A DNA stretch of 64,000 bases from Macrostomum lignano (Eukaryota). The DNA lies in the NCBI GenBank assembly GCA_002269645.1, contig NIVC01000980.1, forward strand, positions 248,001 to 312,000, in the 5' to 3' direction. The position numbers were made by a program, and so were the translations under genes. The notes below the pieces were generated by a model that searched no databases, was not told the DNA's origin, and saw nothing but the letters and a program-made list of their open reading frames with translations. The first letter of the stretch is position 1, and each line of letters opens with the position of its first letter. Below are positions 4,631 through 55,100 of the stretch, one piece after another.

Positions 4631-5585
4631 TAATAATATTGTTATTACTAACGATACATTTCTTCTCCTCGATTCAACACGTATTTAGCGGAGGATTTCT
4701 GATCGAACAGTGCAAGTTCGAAGAAAATCGGTTGAGCCATTTTTTCTCTAATCGATCACATAGATACCTATACCTACCGACAAACCATTTTTAGTATTTT
4801 ACGAGTAGAAGCAGCTCCCGATTTTTTTCTTTCTCAAACCTAAAAATTTCTAGTTAGCCCTTTCTTACTGTTGACTAAAACAGTGAAGAACCAATTGCAG
4901 GGCAGCTGGCTGCTTCTTCATCAACTTTGGTTTCTAGTCAAGACTGGTGCGGGGCGCGACCAGACCGGGCCGCTTTTGTTGTTTTTGGCGCACGTGTTGA
5001 GCGTGCAGCATTCGTATGCTTTCCTGCTTATCCTACCCTGCTGCCCGTTCGTCAGCCATTTTCTTATTAAATCCACCTCCATAATGTGGACAAAAGCGAC
5101 GGAGTGAAGGGCTGTTGAGTGCTGTTGACTCCTCTCTGTCTCTCCGCTCTCAATTGACGCGGCCATGGATGTCTTAAGCTAAAAGTCTGGACTAGAAAAG
5201 TTAATTAAAGTTGTCTAAAAATGCTAAAAAAAGACTGTTATATTTCCTATGTTTTAGCTCAAGTCATAAACTCTGGGAGCGGAGCAGCTCAGCTGCAAAC
5301 GCGTCTACGACTCACGGGGTCACGCCCTCTTGGTGGTGGTCGCTGTACACCCTGCAGCTCTTCCAGACTCTCACTCTTATAGCACTCCCTGGCTTGTCTC
5401 AGGCAGGCAGACAGGCGGTCATATTCTGATGAGTCAGCAGCAATGAATGGAATTCATTATAATATAATAGCTCAAAGCAAGTTTTCAGTAGACTGCAGCA
5501 AGTCTACTGGGTCGCATGGTGGGGTTGGTGGGGGGGTGCCTGCCTGCGGCAACCCACCGCACAGAGGGCTCAGGCTGCTGCAGTC

Positions 5586-5593
5586 TATAAATA
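5586..5593 (+). promoter_or_regulatory. TATA box of the small secreted-peptide gene
   Basis: TATAAATA about 120 bp upstream of the ATG at 5711; AATAAA at 6065-6070 downstream of the stop. Confidence 0.55.
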
Positions 5594-5710
5594 AACGGCC
5601 CCTGTGGAGCGAAGCCGTAAGCCAATTCTTATAGACTCCCCAGGCGCATCGATTCGTCAGGAATTCGTGCAGCGGTGCTGATTCGTGAGCCGGAGATCTC
5701 TTGCTGCCAA

Positions 5711-5947
5711 ATGCGCTGCGTTTTGCTGTTGTCGCTGCTGCTGCTGCTGCTGACGACGGCACTGACTGCCAAGCCGGTGTCTCAGCCAGCTGATGCTGAC
5801 GACGGTCCGTTCGACGCCGCCGATGACGCCGACGAGCTGGCCGAGTTGAAACGGAAAGACATCCTGGAAGATTGCCTGCCCTTCCTAGCCAGCACTCTGA
5901 ACGCTCACGACAGCATCCCGGACAAGTGTCGCGGTCTGCTGACCTGA
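5711..5947 (+). CDS. Single-exon 78-aa secreted prepropeptide: signal peptide, acidic pro-region, KR site, two-Cys mature peptide
   Basis: MRCVLLLSLLLLLLTTALTA / KPVSQPADADDGPFDAADDADELAELKR / KDILEDCLPFLASTLNAHDSIPDKCRGLLT*. GC-rich codon usage like the other exons, with TATA and polyA signal. Confidence 0.85.
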   Translation: MRCVLLLSLLLLLLTTALTAKPVSQPADADDGPFDAADDADELAELKRKDILEDCLPFLASTLNAHDSIPDKCRGLLT

Positions 5948-6429
5948 TTGAATTCTGACAATAATGGAATTTTGAGATCATCTATCTATAGCACACCAGT
6001 ATCCAGCTGCTCCTGCTGAGTTGCATGTGCGCAATTCTCAAAGAGTTTGTATAAAAATGTGCTAAATAAAACTGAGCCACTAATTAAAATGAAAAATTTA
6101 TCCAATAATCGATCGGTCTTCGTTATGCTACTTACAGTTGCGTAGAAGTAGTATGCGTAACATTTTTGCTTTTTTGTTAAGGGCCGTAGTTGCATGACCT
6201 TCAGATGCACGCACCGCACAATATAAAAATTTTAATACTACTGTACATGTATCTCCTTCTTACTACTTACGAGTAGTAATGTATCGTGTATTATCGGCGA
6301 AATTGGTATGTGTGTACCATGAAAGGGAGATTTTGCTGTTGTTGTATCCGAAAGGAAAGCTCCGCAGAAAATCTACTATTTTTCATCATCTTGAAGGTTA
6401 TCCACTGAAAAGTAACGTAAAGTTAACGG

Positions 6430-7025
6430 AGAGGGAGAGGGAGAACAGAGAGGGAGAGGGAAAGAGAGGGGGAGAGGAGAGAGTGTGAGGGGAGATGAGA
6501 GTGTGAAGGGAGATGAGAGTGTGAGGGGAGAGGAGAGTGTGAGGGGAGATGAGAGTGTGAGGGGAGATGAGAGTGTGAGGGGAGATGAGAGTGTGAGGGG
6601 AGATGAGAGAGGGAGAGGGGAAGGGGAGAGGGAGAGTAAAGAGACAGGAGAGGGCAGAGGAGAGGAGATGAGTGAGGGGGAGAGGGAGAGTGAAGAGAAA
6701 GGAGAGATCAAGCAGAGGAGAGGAGATGAGAGAGGGAGAGTGAAGAGACAGGAGAGGGCAGAGGAGAGGAGATGAGAGAGGGAGAGTAAAGAGACAGGAG
6801 AGGGCAGAGGAGAGGAGATGAGAGAGGGAGAGTGAAGAGACAGGAGAGGGCAGAGGAGAGGAGATGAGTGAGGGGGAGAGGGAGAGTGAAGAGACAGGAG
6901 AGATCAAGCAGAGGAGAGGAGATGAGAGAGGGAGAGTGAAGAGACAGGAGAGGGGAATAGGAAAGGAGAGAGGGTGAGGGCAAAGAAGAGAGTGAGATGG
7001 TAAGAGTAGAGTGTGAGAGAGAAGA
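6430..7025. repeat. GA-rich compound minisatellite (18-bp GAGAGTGTGAGGGGAGAT units, then longer GAGAGGGAGAGTGAAGAGACAG units)
   Basis: Repeated purine units; spurious ORFs on both strands. Confidence 0.9.
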
Positions 7026-7849
7026 GGAGACACAAGTCCAAGCAGCATTCTTCGCTCTGTGAGTGGCCTTTTTGAAATCCTGTCGCTTGTCATCCCGCAC
7101 AAATTAAAAATTAATTCATACCGGTATTGAGAGGATTTTGTCGCAGAGCTCATGGGTCATACAAAACTATTGAAGGCTTTGCTGCGGCACAAATAACAGT
7201 TTGAACTTTGACAGTAGAGAGAGAGAGTGAGTGCAGGGTGCGGTGAGTTATCAGTGTTTTCCTACTTGTAATGTATGAGCTAAATTCCAAGTAGCCAAAC
7301 GATTTAAAAGCTTATAATTGATCAGTTTAGTGAGCACGTGATGCCATTGTCCCTAATCTTGAAAAGTGAAAATCGGCATTAAGAATGCAACACCATGCAT
7401 ATCGCCCTCTTCAATTATCTCTATCAAATCGATGAGTTATTACAGCACGAATAAACAACTTGTTGAGCAGCCATTGCTCAGCACAAATCCCTTTTGAGTC
7501 TGTGATGGAATTTGCCGCCGATTTAGGCTACCCGATAATTCCCCAATTGTTGAGACTCTGCTCCAGTGAGCAGTCCCAGAGAGATAAATGCTGGATGAGA
7601 TAAGCGATTTGCAGGTTGCCAACCTGGACTGAGCCATTGCGCAACTCCTTGACAGCCTATGGACTCGAGGGGTATCGAGATTTCCGATTTAGTTTAATAA
7701 TAATCGGATTCTATAACCATGTCCCCCAGGGCATGTTTGCCAGCTCTGATGAGGACCAATTAAACTGGCAGGCTTAATCACGGCTCGTTCAACCTTAATA
7801 GGCCACCCCCTCCCCTCGAACCGGGTTGAGATATTAGCTCCGGGGCTGC

Positions 7850-8587: not shown

Positions 8588-11500
8588 ATGACATCTGCAG
8601 TGAAATCCTTGACCAATTTCACAATCGAGGGCATTCTGAGCAGTGCCGCAGTTTTTGAGTCCAACGGTAGCGAGACAGACTCAAAACTGGACAACTCTGG
8701 CAAGGATTTTGGTAAGCCAGAATTTAATCTCTTTTCTTCTCATGACTTCCTCCTCTATGACCTATGCCCTATGCCTATGAACTATGTATATGACCTATGT
8801 CTATGCCCTATGTCTATGACCTATGTCTATGCCCTATGTCTATGAGCTATGTCTATGACCTATGTCTATGACCTATGTCTATGACCTATGTCTATGACCT
8901 ATGTCTATGACCTATGTCTATGACCTATTTCTGTGACCTATGCCTATTACCTATGACCCATGCCCTATGTCTATGACCTATTTCTGAGACCTATGCCTAT
9001 GACCTGTTTTCCGCCCCGCAGATGACTCCAGGCAGCAGCTTCGCGGCGCCTGCTGCCCCGACAACGAAGAAGTCGACGACGCTCGATCTTCGTCGGCGGC
9101 GGCAGCGCGGAAGATTCGCAGATCGCGGACCACCTTCACCACCTACCAGCTGCACCAGCTCGAGCAGGCGTTCGAGAAGACGCAATACCCGGACGTGTTC
9201 GCTAGGGAGGACCTGGCGCAGCGGCTGCAGCTCAGCGAGGCCAGAGTTCAGGTGAGAGAATTGGGGTCGCATCTGGGATGCTGGGGAGAAGTGTGGATAA
9301 CTAGGGAGTAAAATTTTGGTTGAAAGAGTTTGTTTGAGGACGTGTCGATTGGAGTAGGAAAGTAACAAGAAGGATATTAGAGAGTGGGAGGGAGACTAGA
9401 GAGAGAGAAGGAGAGAGGAGAGGGATATTAGAGAGAAGGGAGAAGGAGATTAGAGAGGGGAGAAGGAGACTGCATAGGAGGGGGGAGAGGGAGATTAGAG
9501 AGAGAGAGGAGAGGGAGACTAGAGAGGGTAAGGAGATTATAAAGAGGAGAAGGAGAATAGAGAGAAGAGAGTAGGAGACTAGAGAGAAGAGAGGAGAAGG
9601 AGACTAGAGAGAAGAGAGGAGAAGGAGACTAGAGAGATGGGAGGGAGAATAGAGAAGAGAGGGAGATTAGAGAAAGGAGGAGGCGACTATAGAGGAGATT
9701 ATAGAGGAGAGGGTGACTAGAGAGGGAGAGGGGAGGGAGACTAGAGAGAAGACTAGAGAGAGGAGAGTAAGATTAAAGAGGACAGAAAATGGAGGTTGAG
9801 ATGGAAGACGAGAGATGGGGCATGGAAGCTGCAAGAAGACAAGAAGAGACACCAAAAGCAATGAAGCGGGAGCCAGCGGTAGCTAAAGTGATTAGTATAT
9901 CATTGTGAAACTCATTCAACTGCACAATGGCACCATATTATGAGTATAGTTTTAATCTGGCCTGTGATCTATCAACCTGCATAAGTTCTCGTATAACTAT
10001 AGAAGCCTAATTAAAGGAGTTTAAGCTCTTCAGCTCAACAGCGAGCTCGAGCTTAATGACTTTGTTAAACAGCCAATTTCATTACGGTTCAAAAGCTTTC
10101 CGAGTAGCTCAATAGTTTAACCGATTATTAAACTGAAAATTGCTCAGGAATTGATACCCCCCCCTGCTCCCCATGAATAATGATTCCGGGCGAGTGACTT
10201 GAGCTCAGTCTGTTAGGAGTGACATTGCTGGTTCACTGGCTTGGCACAATTCTCACTGCAGTTCGTGACGCATGGGGGTGGGGCTGTATAGCTCGGCCAA
10301 AGCCATTCGAGCCAGTTCGAGCGTGTTCGCTAAATTGGTGAAAAATATCTAAAAGACAGAAATTAATTGGCAAAGATTCGCCTGCGCATGAAGGCTTCTC
10401 AGCGAAATGCCTGAAATTTGTTTATATTAGAAACAAAAGATTAGCGATTAGAAAGATTAGCTGCGCCCCCGTGAACCGATTGTCAGTGCCTGCAATCAGA
10501 GCTCAAGCCACTGGTAATTAGTGGATCACAATTCAAATTGCTCAATTCATGCTGAGCTGGGGATCAATTTTAAACAAATTTTTTTTACCCCCGAGAAAAT
10601 AAAAAAAGACAAACAAAAGGCCCCCCAATTAACGCTCATTCCTTTAATTTGAAACCTGACAAAACTGCGCGTCACACAGCACGTTTTAGCCTCACCAATT
10701 AATTAGGCTCGTAATGAGCCGACAGACATTCTAAATTGATTTGGTTTCGTTTTAAACCGAACTCCAATCTCATTAAATCTAGCTGTGGTTGAGACCATTT
10801 GACTCAACTTTTATAATTAAAATTCAAGCCTATTGTTGACTAATTAGTTTTTTATCTTCAACCGGACAAACTTTATGCCCACACATCAGACACTAGATGC
10901 CAGACCGCTAGATACCAGACAATAGATACCAGACACTGCTAGATACCAGACAATAGATACCAGACACTGCTAGATACCAGACAATAGATACCAGACACTG
11001 CTAGATACCAGACAATAGATACCAGACACTGCTAGATACCAGAAAATAGATACCAGACACTGCTAGATACCAGACAATAGATACCAGGCACTGCTAGATA
11101 CCAGTCACTAGATACCAGACACTGCTAGATACCAGACAATAGATACCAGACACTGCTAGATACCAGACAATAGATACCAGACACTGCTAGATACCAGACA
11201 ATAGATACCAGACACTGCTAGATACCAGACAATAGATACCAGACACTGCTAGATACCAGTCACTAGATACCAGACACTGCTAGATACCAGACAATAGATA
11301 CCAGACACTGCTAGATACCAGACAATAGATACCAGACACTGCTAGATACCAGACAATAGATACCAGACACTGCTAGATACCAGTCACTATGCCAGAAGTT
11401 AGCAATAACCAACAACCCCCCCCCTCACCCCAGGTGTGGTTTCAGAACAGGCGAGCGAAGTGGCGCAAGCGGGAGAAGCAGCAGCGCCACGAGCCCGGAG

Positions 11501-11721
11501 CTGACCGAGCCGCAGCGGCCTCCACCATGGCAGCAGCCGCCGCAGCCGCCGCCGCAGCCTCGGCGTGGCATCCGCAGCATCATCAGCTTCATCATCCTCA
11601 GCAGCATCAGCATCAGCAGCCTCTCATTCCGCCAGAGCTGCTGTGGGCGGCGCAGGCGCTCCACCCTCTGCTGCGGCCTCCGACAGTCACCAGCAGCTCC
11701 AACACAAACGCCTGGAGCTGA
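8588..11721 (+). CDS. hbn: Homeobrain, PRD-class Q50 homeobox; exons 8588-8711, 9022-9251, 11434-11721; 213 aa
   Basis: N-terminal eh1 motif FTIEGIL. Homeodomain [48 protein letters not shown]|[14 protein letters not shown] closely matches Drosophila Hbn as I recall it ([25 protein letters not shown]). Typical PRD-class intron between Q and VWFQ; phases consistent (642 nt). Confidence 0.88.
8755..9003. repeat. CTATGACCTATGT-type minisatellite in hbn intron 1
   Basis: Repeated CTATG/CCTATG units running nearly to the acceptor at 9021. Confidence 0.9.
9370..9790. repeat. GA-rich degenerate repeat in hbn intron 2
   Basis: GGAGACTAGAGAG / GGAGATTAGAG units. Confidence 0.8.
10895..11390. repeat. 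GCTAGATACCAGACAATAGATACCAGACACT minisatellite in hbn intron 2
   Basis: About 31-bp period made of two TAGATACCAG sub-repeats; ends about 40 bp before the acceptor at 11433. Confidence 0.92.
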
Positions 11722-28093: not shown

Positions 28094-31000
28094 CCTCTCC
28101 TTCAGTCTCCCTCTCCCTCAGTCTACTCCCTCCCCTCAGTCTCCCTCTCCCTCAGTCTACTCCCCAGTGTTGGGCACTTCCGTTACCGAGTAACTTGCAA
28201 ATGGTAACGCAAGTTACTTTTTCGTAAAGCGTACCTTACGCAAGTTACTTTCCTATTTTGGTAACGGAGTAACGGTAAGTTACTCAAATTTCAGAAGTCC
28301 GTTACAGTTACTTTGCAACAATCGCAATATTTAAATTTAAAACTGAAATGCTTAGCTATTACGCCGGTTGTCACATGTTTTTGCATTTTTCATTCCTAAA
28401 TTCAAAATTAAGTGAATAGTATCATATGGTATTGCGCTTAATTAATGAAGAAATACTTGAAACATGTTTTACTTTGTTAATTTCGGTAAAATATTGTCGC
28501 CTTTCATTTTCGTTACTAAAAATTTTCAAGTTTGATTCAAACAAACAACCAAAGAAAGAAATTCATCTGTAGCCTCCACAAGTCCCTCCACTGGCACTGC
28601 AGTACACTAAACCATTTTATACAGTTCTATTTATTTTACTCTATTGAATTATTGATATTCGTTTATTTATCATTTATAATTTTAATTATTGATTGCCATT
28701 GCCCATTGGTCCTTCTACTTGCCTCACATCGTGTCGCCAATTCCTGTCTCTGTCTGTTAATCGGTTAATCCCAATGCCCAATGGCAAATTTCGGTAACAA
28801 CAATGTGAAAAAATGTGCAATGTGAAAAAAAGCTGAAAATTTTTGTTAATAACATGGGTAACGGAAGTGAGTAACGGACAGTAACTTAAAAGTTACCAGA
28901 TTTTTGTCTAAAGTTACTAGGCTAACGTAAGTTACCTTTTAAAAATTGGTAACTTAAGTTACAGTAACGCAAGTTACTTTTTTTGAGTAACTTGCCCAAC
29001 ACTGCTACTCCCTCCCCTCAGTCTCCCTCTCCCTCAGTCTACTCCCTCCCCTCAGTCTCCCTCTCCCTCTCCCTCAGTCTTCTCCCTCAGTCTACTCCCT
29101 CTCCCTCAGTCTACCCCCTCTCCCTCAGTCTACCCCCTCTCCCTCAGTCTACTCCCTCTCCCTCAGTCTACTCCCTCCCCTCAGTCTCCCTCTCCCTCAG
29201 TCTACTCCCTCCCCTCAGTCTCCCTCTCCCTCAGTCTACTCCCTCCCCTCAGTCTCCCTCTCCCTCTCCCTCAGTCTTCTCCCTCAGTCTACTCCCTCTC
29301 CCTCAGTCTACCCCCTCTCCCTCAGTCTACCCCCTCTCCCTCAGTCTACCCTCTCTCCCTCAGTCTACTCCCTCCCCTCAGTCTCCCTCTCCCTCCCCTC
29401 AGTCTACTCCCTCTCCCTCAGTCTACTCCCTCCCCTCAGTCTACTCCCTCCCCCTCAGTCTACTCCCTCTCCTCAGTCTCCCTCTCCCTCAGTCTACTCC
29501 CTCCCCTCAGTCTCCCTCTCCCTCTCCCTCAGTCTACCCCCTCTCCCTCAGTCTACTCCCTCTCCCTCAGTCTACTCCCTCCCCTCAGTCTACTCCCTCT
29601 CCCTCAGTCTACTCCCTCCCCTCAGTCTCCCTCTCCCTCAGTCTACTCCCTCCCCTCAGTCTCCCTCTCCCTCTCCCTCAGTCTTCTCCCTCAGTCTACT
29701 CCCTCTCCCTCAGTCTACCCCCTCTCCCTCAGTCTACCCCCTCTCCCTCAGTCTACTCCCTCTCCCTCAGTCTACTCCCTCCCCTCAGTCTCCCTCTCCC
29801 TCAGTCTACTCCCTCCCCTCAGTCTCCCTCTCCCTCAGTCTACTCCCTCCCCTCAGTCTCCCTCTCCCTCTCCCTCAGTCTTCTCCCTCAGTCTACTCCC
29901 TCTCCCTCAGTCTACCCCCTCTCCCTCAGTCTACCCCCTCTCCCTCAGTCTACCCCCTCTCCCTCAGTCTACTCCCTCTCCCTCAGTCTACCCCCTCTCC
30001 CTCAGTCTACTCCCTCTCCCTCAGTCTACTCCCTCTCCCTCAGTCTACTCCCTCCCCTCAGTCTCCCTCTCCCTCTCCCTCAGTCTTCTCCCTCAGTCTA
30101 CTCCCTCTCCCTCAGTCTACCCCCTCTCCCTCAGTCTACTCCCTCCCCTCAGTCTCCCTCTCCCTCTCCCTCAGTCTTCTCCCTCAGTCTACTCCCTCTC
30201 CTTCAGTCTACCCCCTCTCCCTCAGTCTACCCCCTCTCCCTCAGTCTACTCCCTCCCCTCAGTCTCCCTCTCCCTCTCCCTCAGTCTTCTCCCTCAGTCT
30301 ACTCTCTCTCCCTCAGTCTACCCCCTCTCCCTCAGTCTACCCCCTCTCCCTCAGTCTACTCCCTCTCCCTCAGTCTACCCCCTCTCCCTCAGTCTACTCC
30401 CTCTCCCTCAGTCTACTCCCTCTCCCTCAGTCTACTCCCTCCCCTCAGTCTCCCTCTCCCTCTCCCTCAGTCTTCTCCCTCAGTCTACTCCCTCCCCTCA
30501 GTCTCCCTCTCCCTCAGTCTACTCCCTCCCCTCAGTCTCCCTCTCCCTCTCCCTCAGTCTTCTCCCTCAGTCTACTCCCTCTCCCTCAGTCTACCCCTCT
30601 CCCTCAGTCTACCCCCTCTCCCTCAGTCTACTCCCTCTCCCTCAGTCTACCCCTCTCCCTCAGTCTACTCCCTCTCCCTCAGTCTACCCCTCTCCCTCAG
30701 TCTACTCCCTCTCCCTCAGTCTACTCCCTCTCCCTCAGTCTACTCCCTCCCCTCAGTCTCCCTCTCCCTCTCCCTCAGTCTTCTCCCTCAGTCTACTCCC
30801 TCTCCCTCAGTCTACCCCCTCTCCCTCAGTCTACTCCCTCCCCTCAGTCTCCCTCTCCCTCTCCCTCAGTCTTCTCCCTCAGTCTACTCTCTCTCCCTCA
30901 GTCTACCCCCTCTCCCTCAGTCTACCCCCTCTCCCTCAGTCTACGCCCTCTCCCTCAGTCTACCCCTCTCCCTCAGTCTACTCCCTCTCCCTCAGTCTAC

Positions 31001-33095
31001 TCCCTCTCCCTCAGTCTACTCCCTCCCCTCAGTCTCCCTCTCCCTCTCCCTCAGTCTTCTCCCTCAGTCTACTCCCTCCCCTCAGTCTCCCTCTCCCTCA
31101 GTCTACTCCCTCCCCTCAGTCTCCCTCTCCCTCTCCCTCAGTCTTCTCCCTCAGTCTACTCCCTCTCCCTCAGTCTACCCCCTCTCCCTCAGTCTACCCC
31201 TCTCCCTCAGTCTACTCCCTCTCCCTCAGTCTACCCCCTCTCCCTCAGTCTACTCCCTCTCCCTCAGTCTACTCCCTCTCCCTCAGTCTACTCCCTCCCC
31301 TCAGTCTCCCTCTCCCTCTCCCTCAGTCTTCTCCCTCAGTCTACTCCCTCTCCCTCAGTCTACCCCCTCTCCCTCAGTCTACCCCCTCTCCCTCAGTCTA
31401 CCCCCTCTCCCTCAGTCTACCCCCTCTCCCTCAGTCTCCCTCTCCCTCCCCTCAGTCTACTCCCTCCCCCTCAGTCTACTCCCTCTCCTCAGTCTCCCTC
31501 TCCCTCAGTCTACTCCCTCCCCTCAGTCTCCCTCTCCCTCTCCCTCAGTCTACCCCCTCTCCCTCAGTCTACTCCCTCTCCCTCAGTCTACTCCCTCCCC
31601 TCAGTCTACTCCCTCTCCCTCAGTCTACTCCCTCCCCTCAGTCTCCCTCTCCCTCTCCCTCAGTCTTCTCCCTCAGTCTACTCCCTCTCCCTCAGTCTAC
31701 CCCCTCTCCCTCAGTCTACCCCCTCTCCCTCAGTCTACTCCCTCTCCCTCAGTCTACCCCCTCTCCCTCAGTCTACTCCCTCTCCCTCAGTCTACTCCCT
31801 CTCCCTCAGTCTACTCCCTCCCCTCAGTCTCCCTCTCCCTCTCCCTCAGTCTTCTCCCTCAGTCTACTCCCTCTCCCTCAGTCTACCCCTCTCCCTCAGT
31901 CTACTCCCTCCCTCAGTCTCCCTCTCCCTCTCCCTCAGTCTTCTCCCCCAGTCTACTCCCTCTCCCTCAGTCTACCCCCTCTCCCTCAGTCTACCCCCTC
32001 TCCCTCAGTCTACTCCCTCTCCCTCAGTCTACTCCCTCTCCCTCAGTCTACTCCCTCCCCTCAGTCTCCCTCTCCCTCTCCCTCAGTCTTCTCCCTCAGT
32101 CTACTCTCTCTCCCTCAGTCTACCCCCTCTCCCTCAGTCTACCCCCTCTCCCTCAGTCTACGCCCTCTCCCTCAGTCTACCCCCTCTCCCTCAGTCTACT
32201 CCCTCTCCCTCAGTCTACTCCCTCTCCCTCAGTCTACTCCCTCCCCTCAGTCTCCCTCTCCCTCCCCTCAGTCTACTCCCTCCCCCTCAGTCTACTCCCT
32301 CCCCTCAGTCTCCCTCTCCCTCAGTCTACTCCCTCCCCTCAGTCTCCCTCTCCCTCTCCCTCAGTCTTCTCCCTCAGTCTACTCCCTCTCCCTCAGTCTA
32401 CCCCCTCTCCCTCAGTCTACCCCCTCTCCCTCAGTCTACTCCCTCTCCCTCAGTCTACCCCCTCTCCCTCAGTCTACTCCCTCTCCCTCAGTCTACTCCC
32501 TCTCCCTCAGTCTACTCCCTCCCCTCAGTCTCCCTCTCCCTCTCCCTCAGTCTTCTCCCTCAGTCTACTCCCTCTCCCTCAGTCTACCCCCTCTCCCTCA
32601 GTCTACCCCCTCTTCCTCAGTCTACCCCCTCTCCCTCAGTCTACTCCCTCTCCTCAGTCTACCCCCTCTCCCTCAGTCTACTCCCTCTCCTCAGTCTACT
32701 CCCTCTCCCTCAGTCTACTCCCTCTCCTCAGTCTACTCCCTCTCCTCAGTCTACTCCCTCTCCTCAGTCTACTCCCTCCCCTCAGTCTCCCTCTCCCTCA
32801 GTCTACCCCCTCTCCCTCAGTCTACTCCCTCCCCTCAGTCTCCCTCTCCCTCTCCCTCAGTCTACCCCCTCTCCCTCAGTCTACCCCCTCTCCCTCAGTC
32901 TGCCCCCTCTCCCTCAGTCTACTCCCTCTCCTCAGTCTACTCCCTCTCCCTCAGTCTACTCCCTCTCCTCAGTCTACTCCCTCTCCTCAGTCTACTCCCT
33001 CTCCTCAGTCTACTCCCTCCCCTCAGTCTCCCTCTCCCTCAGTCTACCCCCTCTCCCTCAGTCTACTCCCTCTCCCTCAGTCTACTCCTTCTCCC
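28094..33095. repeat. About 4.1 kb pyrimidine-rich minisatellite (variants of CTCTCCCTCAGTCTACTCC), split near its left end by a hAT MITE
   Basis: Array at 28094-28164 and 29005-33095. One frame has no stop, producing the artefactual 1382-aa ORF. Confidence 0.95.
28165..29004. mobile_element. Non-autonomous hAT-type DNA transposon (840 bp)
   Basis: Perfect 12-bp TIR CAGTGTTGGGCA...TGCCCAACACTG and perfect 8-bp TSD CTACTCCC (28157-28164 and 29005-29012). Many GTAAC/GTTAC subterminal motifs at both ends; no transposase ORF. Confidence 0.93.
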
Positions 33096-33487
33096 TATCG
33101 AGCCAGTGTGAAATGCAGGAAAGAATTCTAGCTGCACCTTTTGAGTGTACAGTACATTACTGAAATCCAAAATGCTTTTTTTCCGGTGGGTCAGACTTAT
33201 TTTAATGTAAGTAATTTAAAGGCCAGTTACGTACTTGCATGCGATGAAGCGTTCTCTCCGAAAGAAGATAGACAATGGAGAGTAGAAACGACCAATAGGC
33301 ATGAGTAAGACTAGAAGTAGATATAGCGAAGAGCAAGCAGAGCACAGTGTGCCTGTGCAGGCTCTGTGAATGGATGGCTCGCTTACTCACTGTTTGCCTG
33401 GCCTTATTCATGGCCCAGAGCTAAGAGCCCAAGCAGAATCAGCGAAGGTTGAAAAAATTTAATAATTTAGGTATACTAAAAGCAGCA

Positions 33488-34885
33488 ATGCCACGATATC
33501 AAATCAGCACGCGACTTATCAGCCGCTGGCTATGGACTCTCCTTGTCTTGGCTTCCTGCACCACCTGTCTGTTGCTTCTAGTAGCGCACTCGAGCAGTAG
33601 CAGAGAGTCGAAAAAGCTGTTGCAAAACAAGCCACCAATATTTCTACTTTCTCCGCTAAGATCCCTACAGCAGCAGCATGATCAGAAGCTAAACGGCGAG
33701 CGGTTTCCTGACCAAGTGAGCCGAATTCCCTCCACCCAACCTGTTGCCAGCGGAGGTTTGAGTCTGGATTCGTCGGCTGGGAGCCATGTCCGCAGGCAAC
33801 AGCAACAGAATCACTGGGCACGCACAGAAGCGGTTAAAAAAGCACCGATGCTAGAGCCGACACGACAACCGACAGCAGAGGCAGAAGCACCAACGCCAGT
33901 AGCAAAGCTTCATCCTGCGGACAGTGACAATGCAAGGCCGACACGACAATCAAGGGCACCGTCTGGACAGCCAACGGCTGCAACGAGCTTCCGCGATCTC
34001 TGCTGGCAGCGCGGTTTTAGTCCGGCCTCTGGCAAGCCAATCAACCACACCCCGGGCGATTTCATCATTAGCGAGAGCCGCCTGTGCAGCGGTCGTCCTC
34101 TACTGCTGGCGCTTGTGCACAGCGAGTTCGGCTACCGAAAACGCCGCGACCTCATCCGCAGCACCTGGGCGTCGGTAAACAACATCAACGGGCACCGAAT
34201 CGTAGTAGCATTTGTTGTTGGCGCCACAAGGACAGCTGAGCAGCAGGCAAAGCTGCAGGACGAGAGCCAAGACGCGGCTGACCTTGTGCAGGTTCCGTGC
34301 AGTCCGGATGGCCAGCCCAGCGCGTCAACCTGCAAGGCGCTCTACGGACTCAGATGGGCAAGTCAGAACTGTGCAGGTGCCAGATTTTTGCTAAAGGTTG
34401 ATGACTACGCGTTTGTGAACGTGTTTCAGTTAGTCACCTTAGTAACTGAACGCCTTGCTGACGCAAATCAGACATTTTATTGTCGAACAGCACCTGACGA
34501 GAATCGAATCACGCAATCAGGCTACTATTGGTACGTGAGCGAGGAGGAATGGCCGGAGGATAAGTACCCGCTGCACTGCAAAGGCTTAGCCTATCTAATG
34601 TCGGGAGATCTGCCTTCGCAGTTGGTTCAGTGCGCCGCCTGGCGGAACCTCCTTCATCTAGAGGACATCTTCGTCACGGGCGTGCTGGGCAAAGCATTGC
34701 AGGCCAACTTTATGCACTGGCTCAGAGGCTGGGACTCCGACTGGCTGCATCCGAAACACGCCGGACCGGCTGTAGTCAGTGCACTGGTGCTGGCCACCCC
34801 AGAGGGTGCGCCGCTGCCCAATTTGCAACGGCGCGTCTGGAGAGCGGCTCTCCGTCACAGCGCAGGACTTGCCGGGCTTGACTGA
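33488..34885 (+). CDS. GT31-family beta-1,3-galactosyltransferase-like type II membrane protein, single exon, 465 aa
   Basis: N-terminal TM helix and Ser/Pro/Gln-rich stem, then RRDLIRSTW, VAFVVG, LLKVDDYAFVN, YPLHCKGLAYLMS and EDIFVTG. Confidence 0.88.
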   Translation: MPRYQISTRLISRWLWTLLVLASCTTCLLLLVAHSSSSRESKKLLQNKPPIFLLSPLRSLQQQHDQKLNGERFPDQVSRIPSTQPVASGGLSLDSSAGSHVRRQQQQNHWARTEAVKKAPMLEPTRQPTAEAEAPTPVAKLHPADSDNARPTRQSRAPSGQPTAATSFRDLCWQRGFSPASGKPINHTPGDFIISESRLCSGRPLLLALVHSEFGYRKRRDLIRSTWASVNNINGHRIVVAFVVGATRTAEQQAKLQDESQDAADLVQVPCSPDGQPSASTCKALYGLRWASQNCAGARFLLKVDDYAFVNVFQLVTLVTERLADANQTFYCRTAPDENRITQSGYYWYVSEEEWPEDKYPLHCKGLAYLMSGDLPSQLVQCAAWRNLLHLEDIFVTGVLGKALQANFMHWLRGWDSDWLHPKHAGPAVVSALVLATPEGAPLPNLQRRVWRAALRHSAGLAGLD

Positions 34886-35363: not shown

Positions 35364-38300
35364 CTAGGGCCTGCAAACGTCGGAGAGAACCGGGTTTGGC
35401 CCGAGGTGAGTAAGCCTGGCCCTGGTGAAAACCGGGCAGTGGCAGATAAAATGCTCGGCGTTTTCACTGCCTGAGCGGCAGAAGGGGCACCGCTCCTCGG
35501 GTACTTGGCCCTGAAGGAAGCGGTGGCGAGAGAAGCAGCCATGCCCGGAGAGGGCCATGCTAACTGCTCTGAGGTCTCTGCGGTTGAGCCTGAGGAGGGC
35601 TCTACGCAGGAGAGGGGAGGGGCAGGGGACGGCAGCACGGGATTGCCTACAATTCCGGGTGTCGTGCCACCTGCGGAGATGCTCGGAGTCAGCCCAGCGC
35701 TTAACGCGGGAATTGATCACCGAGGCGGGGATGGGGGCACCCGGGCCCGGCCCCAATAGCGCGCCGGCGGAGCCAGCCTTGGCCAGCAGGTCAGCGCGCT
35801 CGTTGCCGAGGAAGCCGGCGTGGCCCGGGATCCATCTGAGCTCCACCTGGTTGCCTAGCGCAAGCCCGTTGAGCTGGGTGTTGCAGTCCAGGACGGACCT
35901 GGAGCTGGCGGTGCTGCGGCAGAGGGCCCGAAGGGCTGCTTGGCTGTCAGAGTGAAAAATAAATTTCCGGCCGCTAAGCTGCCTTCGGCGCAGCTCTGCC
36001 GCGCAGGAGCTGATGGCAAGCACCTCGCTCTGAAAAACACTGGAGTTGAGCCCAGTGTGCTGGGAGTAGCTCCACACCACTTCTCCCTTGAAGAAGACGC
36101 AAGCTCCGAAGCCTGAAAGACCATGCCTCATAGAGCCGTCAGTGTAACAGTGGACTTCAGAGTCGCTCCAGCTGTCACTCGCCTCGTGTCGAGTCTGAAT
36201 GGTGACCTTATACCTTTGGCTCAGGAGAAGGGTGGCTGGGATCGAGTCCGTGAGGATGTTGAGCCCGCCACACTCCTCGAGAGCCTTGAGGCAGAGGTCA
36301 GAGTGCGGGATAAGCGACCGCTTCTTAAAGGCCCGCACTTTCTTGAAGGCCACCCCAGCATCCAGAAGACGCCGGGTGCTCTTCGCCGCCTCTCCTTTGA
36401 TATAAATATCCAAAGGAGGGGCACAGAGGAAGGCATTCATGCCTTCAAAAGGAGTAGAGGGTGGAGCGCCCATAGTCATGCGGCAGGCTCTGCCCTGGAT
36501 TTTGTAGAGAGCGTCGAGGTTGCTCTTGACGCTCAGGCCGCTAGCCCACACGAGGCTGGCGTAACTGATCGAGGGGCGGATGATGGCAGTGTAAATCCAC
36601 CACAGCTTCCTGGGGGTAAGCCCCCAGGTGGTGCCCACGGCGCGCCTGATCTGAGCCAGTACAGCCAGGGCTTTTTTGGCTTTAGTTTGAATGTGCGGAG
36701 TCCAGTTAAGCCTGTGGTCCAGAGTGAGGCCCAGGCAGCGGACCTGCTTCTCCATGGAAATATTCTTTCCATAGAGGGTGAGGGGCTTAATGGTCCAGAG
36801 CAGTTTGTTGGTAAACATGACTGCTGTGGTTTTCGACTCTGAGAGTCTAAGGCCACATTGGTCTGCCCAACGCTCCGCTCGTCCCAGAAAGCCCTGCAGA
36901 AGGTCTCTGATGGTATCAACCGAGGGGCCCGCGCATATCGCGGTCACATCATCGGCATAGCCCACCTTGAGAATGGGGTCGTGGAGATCACTGCAAAGCA
37001 ACTCATCCATGACCATGTTCCAGAGAACGGGGGTGAGAACGCCGCCCTGGGGGCCCCCTTTCAGGACAGGCACCGAAAGAGAGCTGCCGCTCAGGTGGGC
37101 CACAACAGTGCGGTTTCGGATCATGAACATGATCCACCGGACAAGGTGAGGGTGCGTGGCCCTGGATTCCAGGGCTCTGCAAAAGGCCTCGAAGATGACG
37201 TTGTCGAAGGCCCCCTCAATGTCCAGGAAAAGCGAGAGGGCAAAGCCGCTGCCAAGAACGGCCCTCTCCAGGAAGTCAACAATGACATGGAGAGCACTCT
37301 CGGTTGACCTGCCCGCGCGGAAGGCGTGCTGGTTCTGCGAGAGTGGGAAGCGCTTCAGCTCGACCGAAAGTAGGCGCCAAAGCACCAGTCTCTCGAGGAG
37401 CTTGAGGCAGAAAGAAGTGAGGCTGATAGGCCTGAAGGCCTTCACCGATTGGTAGTCGCTCTTTCCAGGCTTGGGGATAAAGACCACCCGGGCCTCTCTC
37501 CATGTAACTGGTACATAGCCCAGCTCCACACAAGCTCGAAGGAGACGACAGAGCAGGTCCAGGAAGCGGTGGTTTTTCACCGCCTCGTGCAAGAACGCTG
37601 GGTAGATGCCGTCGGGCCCAGGCGCCTTGAACGGGTTAAAGGACCTTGCCGCTCTAAAAATGCGGTCTTTGGTGATCATAGACTTTGCTAGGCCTTGCCC
37701 TCCCACTGTGTGGTCGGGCGGGCCCTGCTGAGTCGGAGATTTAGGGAAAAAACTGCTGAGCATGAGCTCTAGAGTCTCTTCCGAACTCTCTGTGACCGAG
37801 CCGTCAGGTCTCTTCACAACAGAGAGTTTAGAAAAACGGTCATTAGTGAGTGCCTTAACCACGCGGGCTACGGGGCGAGAGCCCTCAAGCCCTTCGCAAT
37901 ATTGGCGCCACTTGGCCGTCTTGGCCCTTCTGACTTGGCCCTTAAACTCGTGGATCGCACGGGTATAGGCCTCTCTGTCAGATGGGTCTTTGGTTTTGAG
38001 CGCTCGCCTTTGGAGGGTCCTGGCTCGGCGTCGAAGGGCCCCGAGCTCTGGGTTCCACCAGGGAGCAGATTTCTTGCCTTTATAGGCCTTTAGGGGGCAG
38101 GCTGCTTCAAAGGCAGTGGTGATCGCCCCGCCCAGGGAGGAGGCGAGATCGTCCACCACCTGGCAGTCAGAGAGGTCACTGGGGGGTCAAGATCCCGAAG
38201 GCCGCGGCTCAGCTTCGAGCCAAAGGCGGCCCAATCGGTGTTCCTGACGTTCCGACTCCAAGTGACCTTAGGCTTTTGCTTGGTCGGCCCAATGCAAAAG

Positions 38301-38959
38301 CGGATAAAGCGGTGGTCCGAGAGCGAGTCCTCGTCCCACACTCGCCAGCCCGTAACTGCGGAAAGCAGTCCGGGTGAGGCGATGGTGGTGTCGATGACTT
38401 CGGCCCACCGCCCATTATTGAACGTTGGTGCATTGCCCACGTTACAGAAGTTGAGGTTAGTGCTGCTGACATAGGCCAGCAGCTCCTCGCCTCTGCTATT
38501 GATGTTCTTGCTGCCCCAATGCAGGTGGTGTGCGTTCACATCCCCTGCAATGAGCAGCTCGAACCGATGGGACGCAGCATAGTCAGTAAGGTTGACTAAC
38601 GCGTCGCAGACAACTGGGGCATCGCTCGGGAAATAGGCAGAAGCTACCAGCACAGGTTTATTGGGAATGAGGTTATTGATTTGAACAACACAGATGTCCC
38701 CAGTCGAGAGATCAGGTCTCATCCATGCCTCAAAAGCTTTTGCAGCAAAGACCAGAGATCTTGGGCGAGGCTGAGAGCCCGCCATGCAAAAACAGTGGTA
38801 GCCAGATGGCACATTATTTGGCTTACCTTTAGTCATCCAGGGCTCCTGTACGAAGACCAGGCCCGGAAGCTGTTGCTCTGCCGTGCGCATCAGGTTGACC
38901 GACGCCGCCACGCAGTGCTGGGTGTTGATCTGCAGACACCAGGTAGTCGCTGGCATCAT
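35364..38959 (-). CDS. LINE ORF2: endonuclease, reverse transcriptase, RNase H and C-terminal CCHC; one frameshift near 38181-38186
   Basis: APE: LQINTQH, VQEPW, AGDVNAH, SDHR. RT: KAPGPDG, FLDIEGAFD, QGGVLTP, YADD. RNase H: YTDGS, QSEVLAI, SDSQ, GNERAD. CPFC..ENAEHFICHC. Adding one C to the C6 run joins the two ORFs as DPPSDLSDCQVVDDLA. Confidence 0.92.
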
Positions 38960-40336
38960 TGCAGATCGGATGTTGCAGCCGCCAGGAGTTCCTCCTCCTC
39001 CTCGGTGCTCACCGGCTTCGGGTCGGGGTCGCCGGTGTCCATGGGCTCTTCTTCAGCAAAAGGCCCCCGATTGGCCGGAAGGCAGTAGGCAGCGTTCGCC
39101 GCCCTTTGCCCACCATCCATGGGGTCCTCCGCCTCAGATTGGCCCAATGCCCTGGAGCAGCCAGCCGCCTGGGCAGGCGGGTCCGTCTCCAGTCGGCCCT
39201 GCCCCGAGGGGTTGGGCCCAGCTGGGACGTCCCCACCCTCCCTGGACGAACTGGTGCGCCTAGGCGTCCCGGCGACCTCTCGCCTCAGCTGGGAGATTTT
39301 GGCGGTGCGGACCGCCTCAGCTGCGCGCTGGTACAGGCCGCGCCGCTTGGTGCTGCGCGCCGGGCGTCGGTCGCCTCCGCCCTCAGCAGCGCGCTCAGCT
39401 TTGCCCGCGCGGCCGTGCTGCCGGGCAGGGCGGTTTGCTTTGGCAGTCTGAGCAGAGGCTTGCGCCTCGGCCCCGGCCGCCTCCGCATCCCGCCCGCCCT
39501 GCTCACTGCCACGGGGAGGGTCGGCCTCGTAGGAGCGGATGCGCAGCTTACAAAGGCCGACGTTGATGAAGCTGCCATGTGGATAACGCCTCATCCAGGC
39601 GTCCGACAGCCCCAGGATGGCTGTGAAGCCAGTGCCGTCGGTGCGCTTAAGGGTGTCATGCACCACTAGGCCCGCGGCGGGAAGCTCCCGGTTGACTGCT
39701 AGCAGTCCTTTCCGGAGCTCGTCAGCAGAGGTAACAACGCTCCTGGCCGGGACCCAGATTCGATGCCTCTTGGTCCGGGGGCGCTCGTCCTCTCTGCAGA
39801 AGGCTAGGTTGAGGTCCCAGCTCTGCTCGGGCAGCAGCTCAAGGAGCCGCCGACCCGAGTCAGCATCACTGGGCCAAATGAGAAGGCACGAGTCCCTCGT
39901 CGCATTCGAATGAATGTTCAGAGGCGTGCCCTTCAGAGTTTGCTTCCACAGGAGGCCATCAACGGCACTTCTCACCTGCTTCAGCTGATCGGGAGACAGG
40001 CGCGCGTCCTTTCCCAGGATGACAACCGCCGGTTGCCTCTTTGCCGCATCAGCGTAGGAGGCCCGGGGGTCAGTGGAGCTTTCTTCAGGTGGGCTGTCCA
40101 CCCTCCCGGCTGCATCGGCCTCCCTATCCTGGGCAGGGGCTTCCGTGGGCTCGAGGCCCTCTTCCGCCACCGCCCCAGACTGGGAAGCTTCCGCTGCCGC
40201 GGGCCGTTGGCCCCTGGCACCGGTTTGGCTTCCGCCCTCCTTGGCCCGCCTCGCCTTGCTACCATCGGGGACGCCTCGGCGAGACCCGTGGAGCCAACTC
40301 TGAGCGGTGCCTCCGAGAAGACACCTGCTACTCCAG
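38956..40336 (-). CDS. LINE ORF1, open to the element's 5' junction with no ATG in that stretch
   Basis: I read the frame of ORF 38956-40170 upstream to 40336 and found no stop and no ATG. The central domain resembles the DUF4780-type ORF1 of LOA elements (recalled, not searched); no zinc knuckle seen. Confidence 0.7.
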
Positions 40337-42719: not shown

Positions 42720-45220
42720 CTACTGATTGTCGACGTCGCCTTCGCCGCCGACAATGGCCGACGTCGATGACGGTCCGTCTAAGGCTTTGACCCGATCGAC
42801 AAGCTGCACTTGTTCCGTATCGATGGATCGCTGCTCTGACAGCAGCCGCATTCGGTGCCGCTTCTGCAGGCCGCCGCTGACGGCCAGCACGAGGCCGGTG
42901 AAGACAGGACTGGGCCGCATCGGCCTGCTCAGGTACTCCGGGTGGAATTGAACCCCGACAAAGTAAGGATGCTCGGCTAGCTCCAGGATTTCCATGCGCT
43001 CGCCGTCCCGGCCGGTGAAGCGCAGGCCCTGCTGTTCCAATTCGTCAACCATCTTAGGATTCACTTCGAAGCGATGCCGGTGCCGCTCCTCGACGTAGGG
43101 CGCGTTCTTGTACAGCCGGCGGACCGTGCTGACGCTCTGGTCCACCACGAATGTTGTCCTGCGCTTGCCGAGTCGCATTGTGCCGCCCATATCGCCCGGA
43201 TTAAATTCGGGCATGTCGATAACAACTGGGTGCTGGGTGTCCTTGGAGAATTCCGTGCTGTTGGCGTCTCGCCAGCCGAGCACGTTGCGGGCGAACTCGA
43301 TCACGGCGCACTGCATGCCCAGGCAGATGCCTGCGGCACAGCGGTGGGGAGGAGTTGGAATACTGGAGGGCGTGACCCCATCATTGACCTGGCTTGGGGG
43401 AGGGCGTGACCCCATCATTGACCTGGCTTGGGGGAGGGCGTGACCCCATCATTGACCTGGCTTGGGGAGAGCGTGACCCCATCATTGACCTGGCTTGGGG
43501 AGAGCGTGACCCCATCATTGACCTGGCTTGGGGAGGGCGTGACCCCATCATTGATCTGGCTTGGGGAGGGCGTGACCCCATCATTGACCTGGCTTGGGGA
43601 GGGCGTGACCCCATCATTGACTTGGCTTGGGGAGAGCGTGACCCCATCATTGACCTGGCTTGGGGAGGGCGTGACCCCATCATTGACCTGGCTTGGGGAG
43701 GGCGTGACCCCATCATTGATCTGGCTTGGGGAGGGCGTGACCCCATCATTGACCTGGCTTGGAGAGGGCGTGACCCCATCATTGATCTGGCTTGGAGAGG
43801 GCGTGACCCTATCAATGACTTGGCTTGGAGAGGGCGTGACCCTATCAATGACCTGGCTTGGGGAGGGCGTGACCCCGATATTGGCTTCGATTGGGGGAGG
43901 TCATCGTTACTCCTGACCGATCTGGGGTCAGGTTGGGGAGGTCATCACTCCATGAGAAATCTGGGTTGGCAACTGGACTGGAAGATAACTATGCATCTAG
44001 TCAGCTACCGATATGTAGCGTAGTTAATTAAAAAGAGCTACAGCACAGAGAACTAAAAAAGCCTCACCCAAGAACGGGCGGTGCATTTTGCGGCACCAAT
44101 CAATAGCGTTGATTTTGCCTTCAACTCCGCGATCGCCGAATCCGCCAGGCACAATAATGCCCTGAGCGGAGCACAGCCGCTGCCAGGCGTTGTGATAAGC
44201 CACCCGGCGCTCGCCGCCGACTCCCTGCTCAAGGTCCTCAGAGTTGATGTACTCAATGCGCAGGGTGAGGTTAGCGTCTAGGCAGGCGTGCTCCAGCGCT
44301 TTGGTAATGCTGGTGTAGGCGTCTGGGAATTTCACGTACTTGCCGACTATGCCGATGTGCACTTCGTCGAGGGCTTGGGCGTCGCTGCGAATGGATTGGT
44401 TAGGAAATCCTGGCATATTTGTAGGCAAGACTACTATTCATTAGTAGCATTATAGGGGTAAGGGAAACTTCTAATATTCTAGGGTAGGCTAGTAGGTTGT
44501 AGCCTAGTAGGGGGTTGTAGCCTAGTGGTTAGAGCGTCGGACTCACGACTTGAAGGTCGAGGGTTCGATTCCCGATTCCACTGGAACAATTTGTCCTTGA
44601 GCAAGACACTCAACTCTGCATTGGATCAGTTCACCCAGCTGTAAAATGGGTGCCAGCATTAGCTGGGGTAATTGAGGGTGTGTGGCTGGCGATCCCCCAG
44701 TCCTTGGACTGAACAGCCGTACGCAGCCTTCAGATGCGCCGGGCAATAGCTGCGGCTGAGCTGTCGGTTGCACATCTGCTCATTAGAGCAGAATGGTCCG
44801 AACTGGGGATATCAAATGATAAGAAATGATTTAAATGCAGCGCCTACCGCTTGGCCAGCTCATGCCAGTCGTCTAGAGACACGTGAGTCGGGGGGCCGCC
44901 GCAGTCCAACTGGAAGTGGCGCAGCAGGAAATGATGCACGCCCTGATCTTTCAGCATGATTGGCACCTTATATAGACTGTTGGCGTCCGGCACGTTGATG
45001 ACCTGGACAGGTGATGGCGGTATGGACAGCCATTGGCTATTATTTTGCTGACAATCATTGCACTGATGCATCTGGGAGTCCCTAATAACAGATATTCTCA
45101 ACTGATCAACTTATGACCCTTTATATGTATAAATCTATCTATCTAGCCATCTATCTATCTATCTATCTATCTATCTGTCTGTCTATCGATTACCTATCTA
45201 TCTGTCTGTCTATCGATTAC

Positions 45221-47435: not shown

Positions 47436-48490
47436 TAGGAGGGTTCGGAAAGTCCGCGATCAAACGTGTCTAACAGATTAACGGATTGAACAAATGTAAC
47501 GCTACTCTTCCTGCTTCTCAACGTAGGCACTCTTGAGACTTATGCACTTGTGCCACCTCTCAGGCAACTTTTCGATTCCGGCGGCATAGAAATCGGCAGG
47601 TGACCCCCTGACCCACTGGCTGATGGCCGATGCCAGGGTCTGTAGAGAGCTGTACTGGCGACCTCGGATGTGTTTTTTCATCTCCCCGAACAGCCAGAAG
47701 TCACTGGGTGCGAGGTCCGGCGAGTAGGGTGGGTGTGGCAGCACCTCGAAGCACAGGTCCGAAATGGCAGCCATTGTTGCCTGGCTGGTGTGCGGCCTGG
47801 CATTGTCGTGCTGAAGCAGGATGCCGTAGCTCAGCTTGCCACGCCGCTGGGCCTTGATAGCTTCACGCAACTTCTGCAGGACTTGGATACAGTACTCACT
47901 GTTGATTGCGGCACCACGGGAAAGCCAAGGAGGGCAAGAGCAGAATGCCCTCCTTGTCCCAGAAGATGGTGGCCATTTGCTTGCCAGCTGAAGGTGCAGT
48001 CAGAGCCTTGATAGGTGTGGGCTCATGGCTGGCCTTCCACACACTGCTCTGCATCTTGGACTCTGGCTCGCTATAATCGAACCAGGATTCATCCCAGTCA
48101 CAATCTGGTCCAAAAAGTTGGGATCTCTGCGATATGACTGGAGCTGCTGACACACCTGGACCCGCTCTCGCTGCTGCTAGTCAGTCAGAAGTTTCGGGAC
48201 CCAATGAGCAACAACGCGCGACATACCGAGCTCAACCGTCAGGATTGAGTGAATGGCTGTTGATGAGATGCCAGTAACGGTTGACAACTCTCACACTGTG
48301 GCTCGGCAGTCAACATCGAGAGCACTACGCACAAACTTGATATTTGACCTGTTGACCCTGGTGGCAGGCCGGCCGCTCTGTGGAAAGTCATCAACCGTCT
48401 CCCAGCTGTCTTCAAAGCAATGGACCCACTTGTTAACTATGGTTTTTGATGGTGCAAATTTACCATATGTTGCTTGCACCTCACAAAGAA
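47436..48490 (-). mobile_element. Decayed mariner (DD34D) transposon, frameshifted and missing one end
   Basis: Fragments in three ORFs: HTH (KWVHCF..DDFPQSGRP), first catalytic D (DWDESW) and HDNARPH...HPPYSPDLAPSDFWLF. Eroded TIR TAGGAGGGTTCGGAAAGT at 47436; no partner TIR found. Confidence 0.88.

Positions 48491-51752: not shown

Positions 51753-51787
<35 letters not shown>

Positions 51788-55013: not shown

Positions 55014-55100
<87 letters not shown>
55014..55100. repeat. Compound (CTA)n(TAA)n microsatellite
   Basis: Pure triplet runs near the 3' end of SINE copy 3. Confidence 0.95.

Follow-up and report, generated by a model that had tools for sequence, protein, structure and literature searches.

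The region analyzed here is a 64,000-nucleotide window of contig NIVC01000980.1 (assembly GCA_002269645.1, positions 248,001 to 312,000 of the forward strand), and the subject of this report is a small gene at window positions 5586 to 6070. An earlier note, made from the letters alone, had described this gene as a compact, TATA-driven, single-exon unit encoding an orphan prepropeptide, and it had looked to lophotrochozoan animals for relatives. The latter agrees with the source of the DNA, the flatworm Macrostomum lignano. As to the gene, every sequence element claimed for the interval was found, exactly where it had been placed (Table 1). The transcription unit is indeed compact, consisting of a TATA box, a 95-nucleotide leader, a 237-nucleotide open reading frame (ORF) and a 3′ untranslated region (UTR) with an AATAAA signal. 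Octamers such as TATAAATA occur just five times on the plus strand of the window. We place the start of transcription, by inference, near position 5616. The ATG at 5711 is the first one 3′ of the TATA box and has the context CAAATGC; the presumed leader carries no upstream ATG, and the frame closes with a TGA codon at 5945-5947. The full 78-residue product is MRCVLLLSLLLLLLTTALTAKPVSQPADADDGPFDAADDADELAELKRKDILEDCLPFLASTLNAHDSIPDKCRGLLT. Because the coding sequence (CDS) is contiguous in the genome and equal to an annotated CDS on a duplicate contig, it comprises a single coding exon.

The product has the layout MRCVLLLSLLLLLLTTALTA / KPVSQPADADDGPFDAADDADELAEL / KRK / DILEDCLPFLASTLNAHDSIPDKCRGLLT. 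A signal peptide, an Asp/Glu-rich spacer, a KR(K) site and a 30-residue product with two Cys residues 17 apart and no amidation signal had all been claimed, and all are present. In a heuristic test, the N terminus displayed an n-region with Arg2, a Leu-rich hydrophobic core of 12 to 17 residues and small residues at positions -1 and -3. Such N termini are rare at this locus: a hydropathy scan identified them in three of the 102 ATG-initiated ORFs of at least 60 residues in the window. Two cleavage sites fit the -3/-1 rule, TTA/LT after residue 17 and LTA/KP after residue 20. The first suits the rule no worse than the second and would end the signal peptide at position 5761; thus the signal-like N terminus stands, while its proposed length of 20 residues is uncertain. 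The spacer that follows is acidic, with Asp or Glu at 9 of its 26 residues, and the secreted part as a whole has a net charge of -8 and an isoelectric point (pI) of 4.2.

The sole clustered basic residues of the protein, KRK at positions 47 to 49, mark the exact junction of the low-complexity acidic segment with the segment that contains the Cys pair. They bound the C-terminal peptide on its N-terminal side, as the stop codon does on its C-terminal side. Without an Arg at P4, KRK is not a furin-type site; cleavage of a site of this kind is expected only from a PC1/3- or PC2-type proprotein convertase (PC) of regulated secretory cells. The 30 C-terminal residues are not of low complexity. They include Cys55 (codon 5873-5875) and Cys73 (codon 5927-5929) in a C-x17-C spacing, and they end in GLLT followed directly by the stop codon, with no Gly-basic amidation signal. 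A third Cys, C3, sits within the signal peptide, so that the secreted part holds two Cys only. The 30-mer has a net charge of -2, a pI of 4.75 and a maximal hydrophobic moment of about 0.47 over 11 residues.

The CDS also contains a 17-nucleotide direct repeat, GCTGCTGCTGACGACGG at 5743-5759 and GCTGATGCTGACGACGG at 5789-5805, the units of which fall in different reading frames, the first giving LLLTT in the signal peptide and the second ADADDG in the spacer. This repeat may be a chance product of low complexity or a trace of the assembly of the ORF from simple sequence.

Table 1. Features of the peptide gene in the window and its copies in the genome. Positions are those of the window unless a contig is named.
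Feature	Position	Strand	Basis and remarks
TATA box TATAAATA	5586..5593	+	125 nucleotides 5′ of the ATG; sequence; intact in 3/3 genomic copies
CDS, 78 codons plus TGA, one coding exon	5711..5947	+	equal to the annotated CDS on NIVC01002238.1; top coding score
Predicted signal peptide, residues 1-20, MRCVLLLSLLLLLLTTALTA	5711..5770	+	hydropathy scan; -3/-1 rule; AlphaFold helix 2-19
(CTG)6 microsatellite; codons for Leu9-Leu14, the Leu core of the signal peptide	5735..5752	+	sequence; (CTG)7 in copy L003
Acidic spacer, residues 21-46, KPVSQPADADDGPFDAADDADELAEL	5771..5848	+	net charge -8; low-complexity GAC/GCC/GCT codons
Tribasic Lys47-Arg48-Lys49, candidate convertase site (KR/K or KRK/D)	5849..5857	+	sequence
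Putative C-terminal 30-mer KDILEDCLPFLASTLNAHDSIPDKCRGLLT (29-mer if cut after K49)	5855..5944	+	100% identical in 3/3 copies
3′ UTR, 3′ end approximate	5948..6090	+	GC content 0.35; AATAAA poly(A) signal at 6065-6070
Copy L002	NIVC01000980.1 (the window's own contig), 7124-7360		ORF present, 100% identical, no gene call
Copy L003	NIVC01001265.1, 7151-7390		ORF intact, 79 residues; 14 substitutions over 1,550 bp; no gene call
Copy L004	NIVC01002238.1		annotated; one G-run indel relative to the window in 1,550 bp (4881-6430)

To score coding potential we used codon-usage log-odds trained on four genes of the window (a homeobox gene, a galactosyltransferase, a CCCH zinc-finger gene and a CTP-synthase exon). 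The sense frame scored +36.9 bits and the other two frames of the same strand -10.4 and +2.3 bits; it was the best among the six frames, and the score settles the choice of frame at this locus. GC contents at the three codon positions were 0.67, 0.42 and 0.75, the last against a third-position range of 0.59 to 0.76 in the neighboring genes. A few other simple-sequence ORFs of the window score equally high, so the codon score discriminates weakly in repeat-rich DNA. The longest competitor on the other strand, an antisense ORF of 169 residues at 5472-5981, was ruled out as a gene by its score of -4.5 bits together with the lack of any Pfam family match. A mobile-element origin was likewise ruled out, as no convincing terminal repeats flank the gene.

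The identical 78-residue protein is already annotated in GenBank, as a hypothetical protein on the duplicate contig NIVC01002238.1 of GCA_002269645.1. The peptide that the earlier note proposed as a candidate new bioactive family is thus not new to the databases. NIVC00000000 is the Mlig_3_7 assembly of this free-living flatworm (PMC5730564). Its GenBank annotation derives from a genome-guided assembly of RNA-seq transcripts, in which reads from trans-splicing and poly(A) sites set the gene boundaries; only coding transcripts free of overlap with repeats were kept (PMC5730564). Since the annotation is derived from transcripts, the gene model is indirect evidence of a transcript.

Copies of the locus were retrieved with the neighboring homeobox gene as an anchor, as its 213-residue protein is identical on three contigs. 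The ORF, the TATA box and the AATAAA signal were intact in all three copies, as were the putative mature peptide, its Cys pair and the candidate cleavage site. Only copy L003 differs from the window within the CDS, by an in-frame CTG insertion that adds a seventh Leu and by a synonymous GCC>GCA change at 5821. Its flanks carry seven substitutions in the 830 bp 5′ of the CDS and six in the 483 bp on the 3′ side (13 in 1.3 kb); the poly(A) signal is unchanged, with small changes directly downstream of it at 6075-6080. This comparison fits constraint on the protein, as far as three sequences from one genome can speak to it. A test of selection between the copies was dropped as underpowered because there is just one substitution in the CDS. 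A practical by-product is that the annotation misses an identical or near-identical gene at two of the three duplicated loci, that of the window's contig included.

The copies are related to one another as a mosaic. In the region of the peptide gene the window equals L004 (no substitutions in 1,550 bp) and L003 differs by 14. In the galactosyltransferase protein encoded 28 kb away, the window differs from both of the others at 9 to 12 residues, and those two differ from each other at three. This pattern suggests recombination or gene conversion between the duplicates, or a chimeric assembly.

That the mature peptide belongs to no recognized family had also been claimed, and the searches bear this out. 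A word-indexed search of 5.8 billion clustered proteins and a full phmmer search of residues 21 to 78 against 1.84 billion representatives each returned the query itself only. Pfam gave nothing above noise for the precursor, the 30-mer, the 169-residue antisense ORF or an upstream ORF of 63 residues. The one candidate, DUF4576 (PF15144), scored 12.2 bits (E = 0.18) against a gathering cut-off of 27 bits; it was rejected, and we read the match as compositional because the alignment spans the signal peptide and the acidic run. The hits from a sequence search of PDB, to light-harvesting proteins and at E of 0.23 or more, were attributable to chance, Foldseek found no PDB match at E = 0.001 or better, and a scan of JGI metagenomes found no relative. 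With tblastn and blastn, the window and the fetched loci yielded no paralogue, diverged or otherwise, beyond the three allelic or duplicate copies. The peptide string had no match in a full-text literature search.

Control searches define the reach of these negatives. Queries with the homeobox protein and the CTP-synthase exon returned no Macrostomum-like sequences from read-assembly sources; for the CTP-synthase exon nothing exceeded 67% identity, and the M. lignano protein itself was not returned either. The databases evidently lack the transcriptomes of Macrostomum congeners, and absence from them says nothing on conservation within the genus. By orphan we mean absent from all of the annotated flatworm and other genomes searched, in databases that evidently cover no congener. 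Judged by sequence comparison in those databases, the gene counts as taxonomically restricted and, as far as shown within their reach, it is restricted to Macrostomum. The claim of a new family, on the other hand, was overstated: this is a singleton in three near-identical duplicate copies.

What do these data say about the product? The locus carries an ORF, transcription signals and a signal-like N terminus. In our judgment it is probably a genuine gene whose product is a small secreted polypeptide: the TATA box, the first-ATG start, the best coding frame, the intact copies and the rarity of the signal-like N terminus all argue for this. More tentatively, and as the reading that we prefer, the product may be a prohormone-type secreted prepropeptide, with the full chain of processing at KR and signaling; to this complete chain we assign a little less than an even chance. 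In its favor are two generic features of prohormones, a signal peptide of the cleavable type by heuristic test and a basic site bounding the product (one site only), and a base rate, as orphan prohormones are common in flatworms. That the product is a signaling peptide is plausible but unproven, and the terms "bioactive" and "cleaved at KR" in the earlier note are inferred from the layout.

If the prohormone-type reading is correct, removal of the signal peptide after residue 17 or 20 would leave an acidic pro-form of 58 to 61 residues with a pI of about 4.2. An intramolecular disulfide between Cys55 and Cys73 would form in the endoplasmic reticulum and staple a C-terminal helix-loop-short-helix. 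Cleavage of the precursor at Lys47-Arg48(-Lys49) would then take place in a regulated secretory cell that has carboxypeptidase E and a convertase of the PC2 type. The cut would free a non-amidated, anionic, disulfide-looped peptide of 29 to 30 residues (about 3.2 to 3.3 kDa) along with an acidic N-terminal peptide. The average masses calculated for the reduced peptides are about 3299.8 Da (30-mer) and 3171.6 Da (29-mer), with 2 Da to be subtracted for the disulfide, and the uncut form of 58 to 61 residues comes to about 6.2 to 6.5 kDa. The C-terminal peptide would signal extracellularly through a receptor, as a neuro- or endocrine peptide or as a peptide in a gland secretion, and would act neither by membrane lysis nor by block of an ion channel. 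AlphaFold models from the single sequence, which are of low confidence (predicted local distance difference test, pLDDT, of 67 for residues 21 to 78 and of 60 for the full length), place a helix at 36-65, a loop and a short helix at 71-74, besides the helix at 2-19 in the signal peptide. The predicted hairpin suits stapling by the disulfide.

Several observations weigh against this interpretation. The prohormone signature is minimal, with a single candidate site for cleavage, a peptide that occurs once in the precursor and a C terminus that lacks an amidation signal. The models put KRK in the middle of the continuous helix at 36-65 and not in a loop, again with low confidence. Two-thirds of the protein come from simple sequence, namely (CTG)6, GAC/GCC repeats and the 17-nucleotide repeat read in two frames, and such sequence can arise without selection. 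Of the three copies, which are identical or nearly so, one alone has a gene call. Conservation is seen in one genome only, and the gene is known here from its sequence and a gene model. At a divergence of about 1% we estimate that about 1.8 non-synonymous changes would be expected between the copies; none was seen, and so shallow a comparison does not establish purifying selection.

One possibility is that the protein is not processed at all. It could be a small secreted gland protein, an acidic polypeptide of 58 to 61 residues that is exported whole, with KRK as a stretch of helix rather than a cleavage site. Candidate sources would be the prostate (seminal fluid) or a pharyngeal, cement, adhesive or rhabdite gland, and its function would lie within the secretion itself, for example as a seminal-fluid component or as a matrix- or ion-binding acidic protein. 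The low-confidence helix that runs through KRK is in line with this possibility. We also asked how often basic clusters arise by chance: some dibasic pair appeared in 43% of shuffles of the secreted part and is by itself unremarkable, which again suits a protein that is not cut, whereas a basic run of three or more residues appeared in 3.4% (p about 0.03), and the position of the tribasic cluster, precisely where the spacer meets the Cys-containing domain, argues for a site. Many prostate-limited transcripts of M. lignano encode short, secreted proteins without homologues: of 65 translated candidates, 38 carry a signal peptide and several gave neither a BLAST hit nor a domain (PMC5977470). Genes of the tail region are enriched for signal peptides, reproduction-related genes are reported to evolve rapidly, and the complete lack of homologues would suit a fast-evolving reproductive or gland protein. 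On the other side, the sequence is absent from the text supplements of the M. lignano seminal-fluid screen (three files, 26,899 characters), which is weak evidence. Taken together, we regard export of the whole protein as somewhat unlikely, though it is the alternative that fares best.

Another possibility is that the ORF is young or spurious, lying in a short or simple-sequence transcript and either untranslated or translated without a selected function, as a proto-gene or a gene of de novo origin would be. No homologue was found in any database searched. In this reading the "signal peptide" would come from a (CTG)6 microsatellite that varies in length from copy to copy, and the "spacer" from a low-complexity GAC/GCC run; the 17-nucleotide repeat in two frames, the tandem-repeat-rich surroundings, the annotation of one copy in three and the similar codon scores of other simple-sequence ORFs in the window all point the same way. 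However, the C-terminal 30 residues are not simple sequence, the TATA box, the use of the first ATG and the poly(A) signal are all appropriate, and the sense frame is clearly the top one of six. In addition, L003 keeps the frame despite its altered microsatellite and its lone CDS substitution is synonymous, so that the protein is otherwise preserved, and a transcript-based annotation pipeline retained the gene as coding. We consider a young or spurious ORF unlikely.

A toxin or antimicrobial precursor, as the earlier note had also proposed, in which an acidic propiece masks a membrane-active or channel-blocking peptide until it is freed at KR, would share its layout of signal, acidic propiece, KR and C-terminal peptide with frog-skin peptide precursors and cone-snail toxin precursors, but it is very improbable: the mature peptide is anionic and of low amphipathicity, leaving nothing cationic for the propiece to neutralize, it can form one disulfide at most, and no frog-skin-peptide, conotoxin or other toxin family turned up in Pfam at E values as high as 10, nor any structural match in PDB.

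A bolder form of the prohormone-type reading would make this gene the founder of a new flatworm family of peptide signals, in which PC2 releases a non-amidated, anionic helix-loop-helix peptide of 29 to 30 residues, closed by a C-x17-C disulfide, that serves as a neuro- or endocrine hormone or, in this hermaphrodite, as an allohormone passed on in a secretion, and in which the signal sequence and spacer may be recent recruits from CTG and GAC/GCC simple repeats. We consider this doubtful. Should the peptide prove to be real and processed, a flatworm model would gain a lineage-specific signaling or secretion peptide, and one for which microsatellite-like DNA served as the source of the signal sequence and spacer. 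Transgenesis and RNA interference (RNAi) are established in M. lignano, so promoter, cell type and function are directly testable. As known, the gene is one among many uncharacterized, lineage-restricted genes for small secreted proteins in M. lignano and opens no long-standing question.

The remainder of the window contains other genes and repeats. Its first 14 kb hold many distinct tandem arrays with periods of 4 to 104 nucleotides. The homeobox gene used as an anchor (BOX15_Mlig028926) is a three-exon gene of the paired class (Q50) at 8588-11721 on the plus strand (exons 8588-8711, 9022-9251 and 11434-11721); it encodes an eh1/octapeptide-like motif, FTIEGIL, and its top matches are Rx/Arx-type proteins. 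A CT-rich satellite at 28983-33131 (plus strand), with a GC skew down to -0.82, reads as a pseudo-ORF of 1,382 residues rich in Ser, Pro and Leu and is interpreted as simple sequence, not as a gene. It is followed at 33488-34885 (plus strand) by the single-exon galactosyltransferase gene, which encodes a type-II membrane protein of the BOX15_Mlig024910 family (Pfam Galactosyl_T, 1.5e-33) whose three copies differ at 0.6 to 2.6% of residues. An apparently intact retrotransposon of the class without long terminal repeats (non-LTR) occupies 35364-40170 on the minus strand, with an ORF1 of 404 residues that has no Pfam match, an Exo_endo_phos_2 endonuclease and a 931-residue ORF for reverse transcriptase and RNase H.

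Further along, on the minus strand, 42720-43418 is an exon for the glutamine-amidotransferase domain of CTP synthase (Pfam GATase, 4.4e-23). A query of the protein database with this exon brought up no protein from M. lignano, and the gene may thus be unannotated or a fragment. An Rfam match to tRNA at 44511-44580 (plus strand; 32.4 bits against a gathering threshold of 29) was not called by ARAGORN and may represent a degenerate tRNA or a repeat of tRNA origin. Positions 48000-56000 form an AT-rich block (GC content 0.33 to 0.37, against 0.55 to 0.62 at 30-40 kb). At 57046-58461 (minus strand) a single ORF encodes a 471-residue protein with tandem CCCH zinc fingers and long runs of Gly and of Ala; starting at either candidate ATG, it has no exact match in the protein collection. 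An ORF of 118 residues at 62484-62840 (minus strand) begins with the signal-peptide-like sequence MTAAVLAALGCLVGAPLTVAAA, scores a moderate 0.26 bit per codon and has no Pfam match; it may be exon 1 of a gene for another secreted protein.

The peptide gene was compared with several known systems, three of which were rejected. The disulfide-rich toxins (conotoxin-like proteins and CS-alpha/alpha hairpins) need at least two disulfides in a Cys framework specific to the family, and here there are two secreted Cys and no Pfam or PDB match. The non-specific lipid transfer proteins (nsLTPs) of plants are defined by a motif of eight Cys and a fold of four helices in about 70 to 90 residues, against two Cys, 30 residues and no Pfam match here; the earlier note had judged its own nsLTP resemblance a coincidence, rightly as it appears. 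Frog-skin precursors of the preprodermaseptin type (PF03032), the third, have in common with this gene a signal peptide of about 20 to 22 residues, an acidic spacer, Lys-Arg and a C-terminal mature peptide. However, they belong to an unrelated phylum, their peptides are cationic and amphipathic whereas this one is anionic, and the PF03032 signal/propiece profile gave no match at E up to 10.

Precursors of the allatostatin-C/somatostatin type, of elevenin and of CCAP consist of a signal peptide, a spacer, a dibasic site and one Cys-looped peptide at the extreme C terminus, and their loops are of roughly 5 to 12 residues. The Macrostomum peptide resembles the allatostatin-C/elevenin-type layout, with a longer C-x17-C loop; it shares no motif with these peptides and has no phmmer or Pfam match to them. 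Within the species, the putative seminal fluid proteins Mlig-pro1 to 76 are also small, predicted to be secreted and often without homologues (PMC5977470). Membership in that set is defined by prostate-limited expression, whereas the gene described here was compared by sequence only and is absent from the text supplements (PMC5977470).

In the planarian Schmidtea mediterranea, 19 "secreted peptide prohormone" genes (spp-1 to spp-19) have no assigned similarity (PMC2953531). The spp genes are backed by peptidomics and by RNAi of pc2, and they have no sequence similarity to the Macrostomum gene, which differs further in its single candidate site and in its long (30-residue), non-amidated and putatively Cys-looped product. 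In their general form, on the other hand, the two are alike: each is a short precursor from the Platyhelminthes with a signal peptide, a basic site and no similarity outside its lineage.

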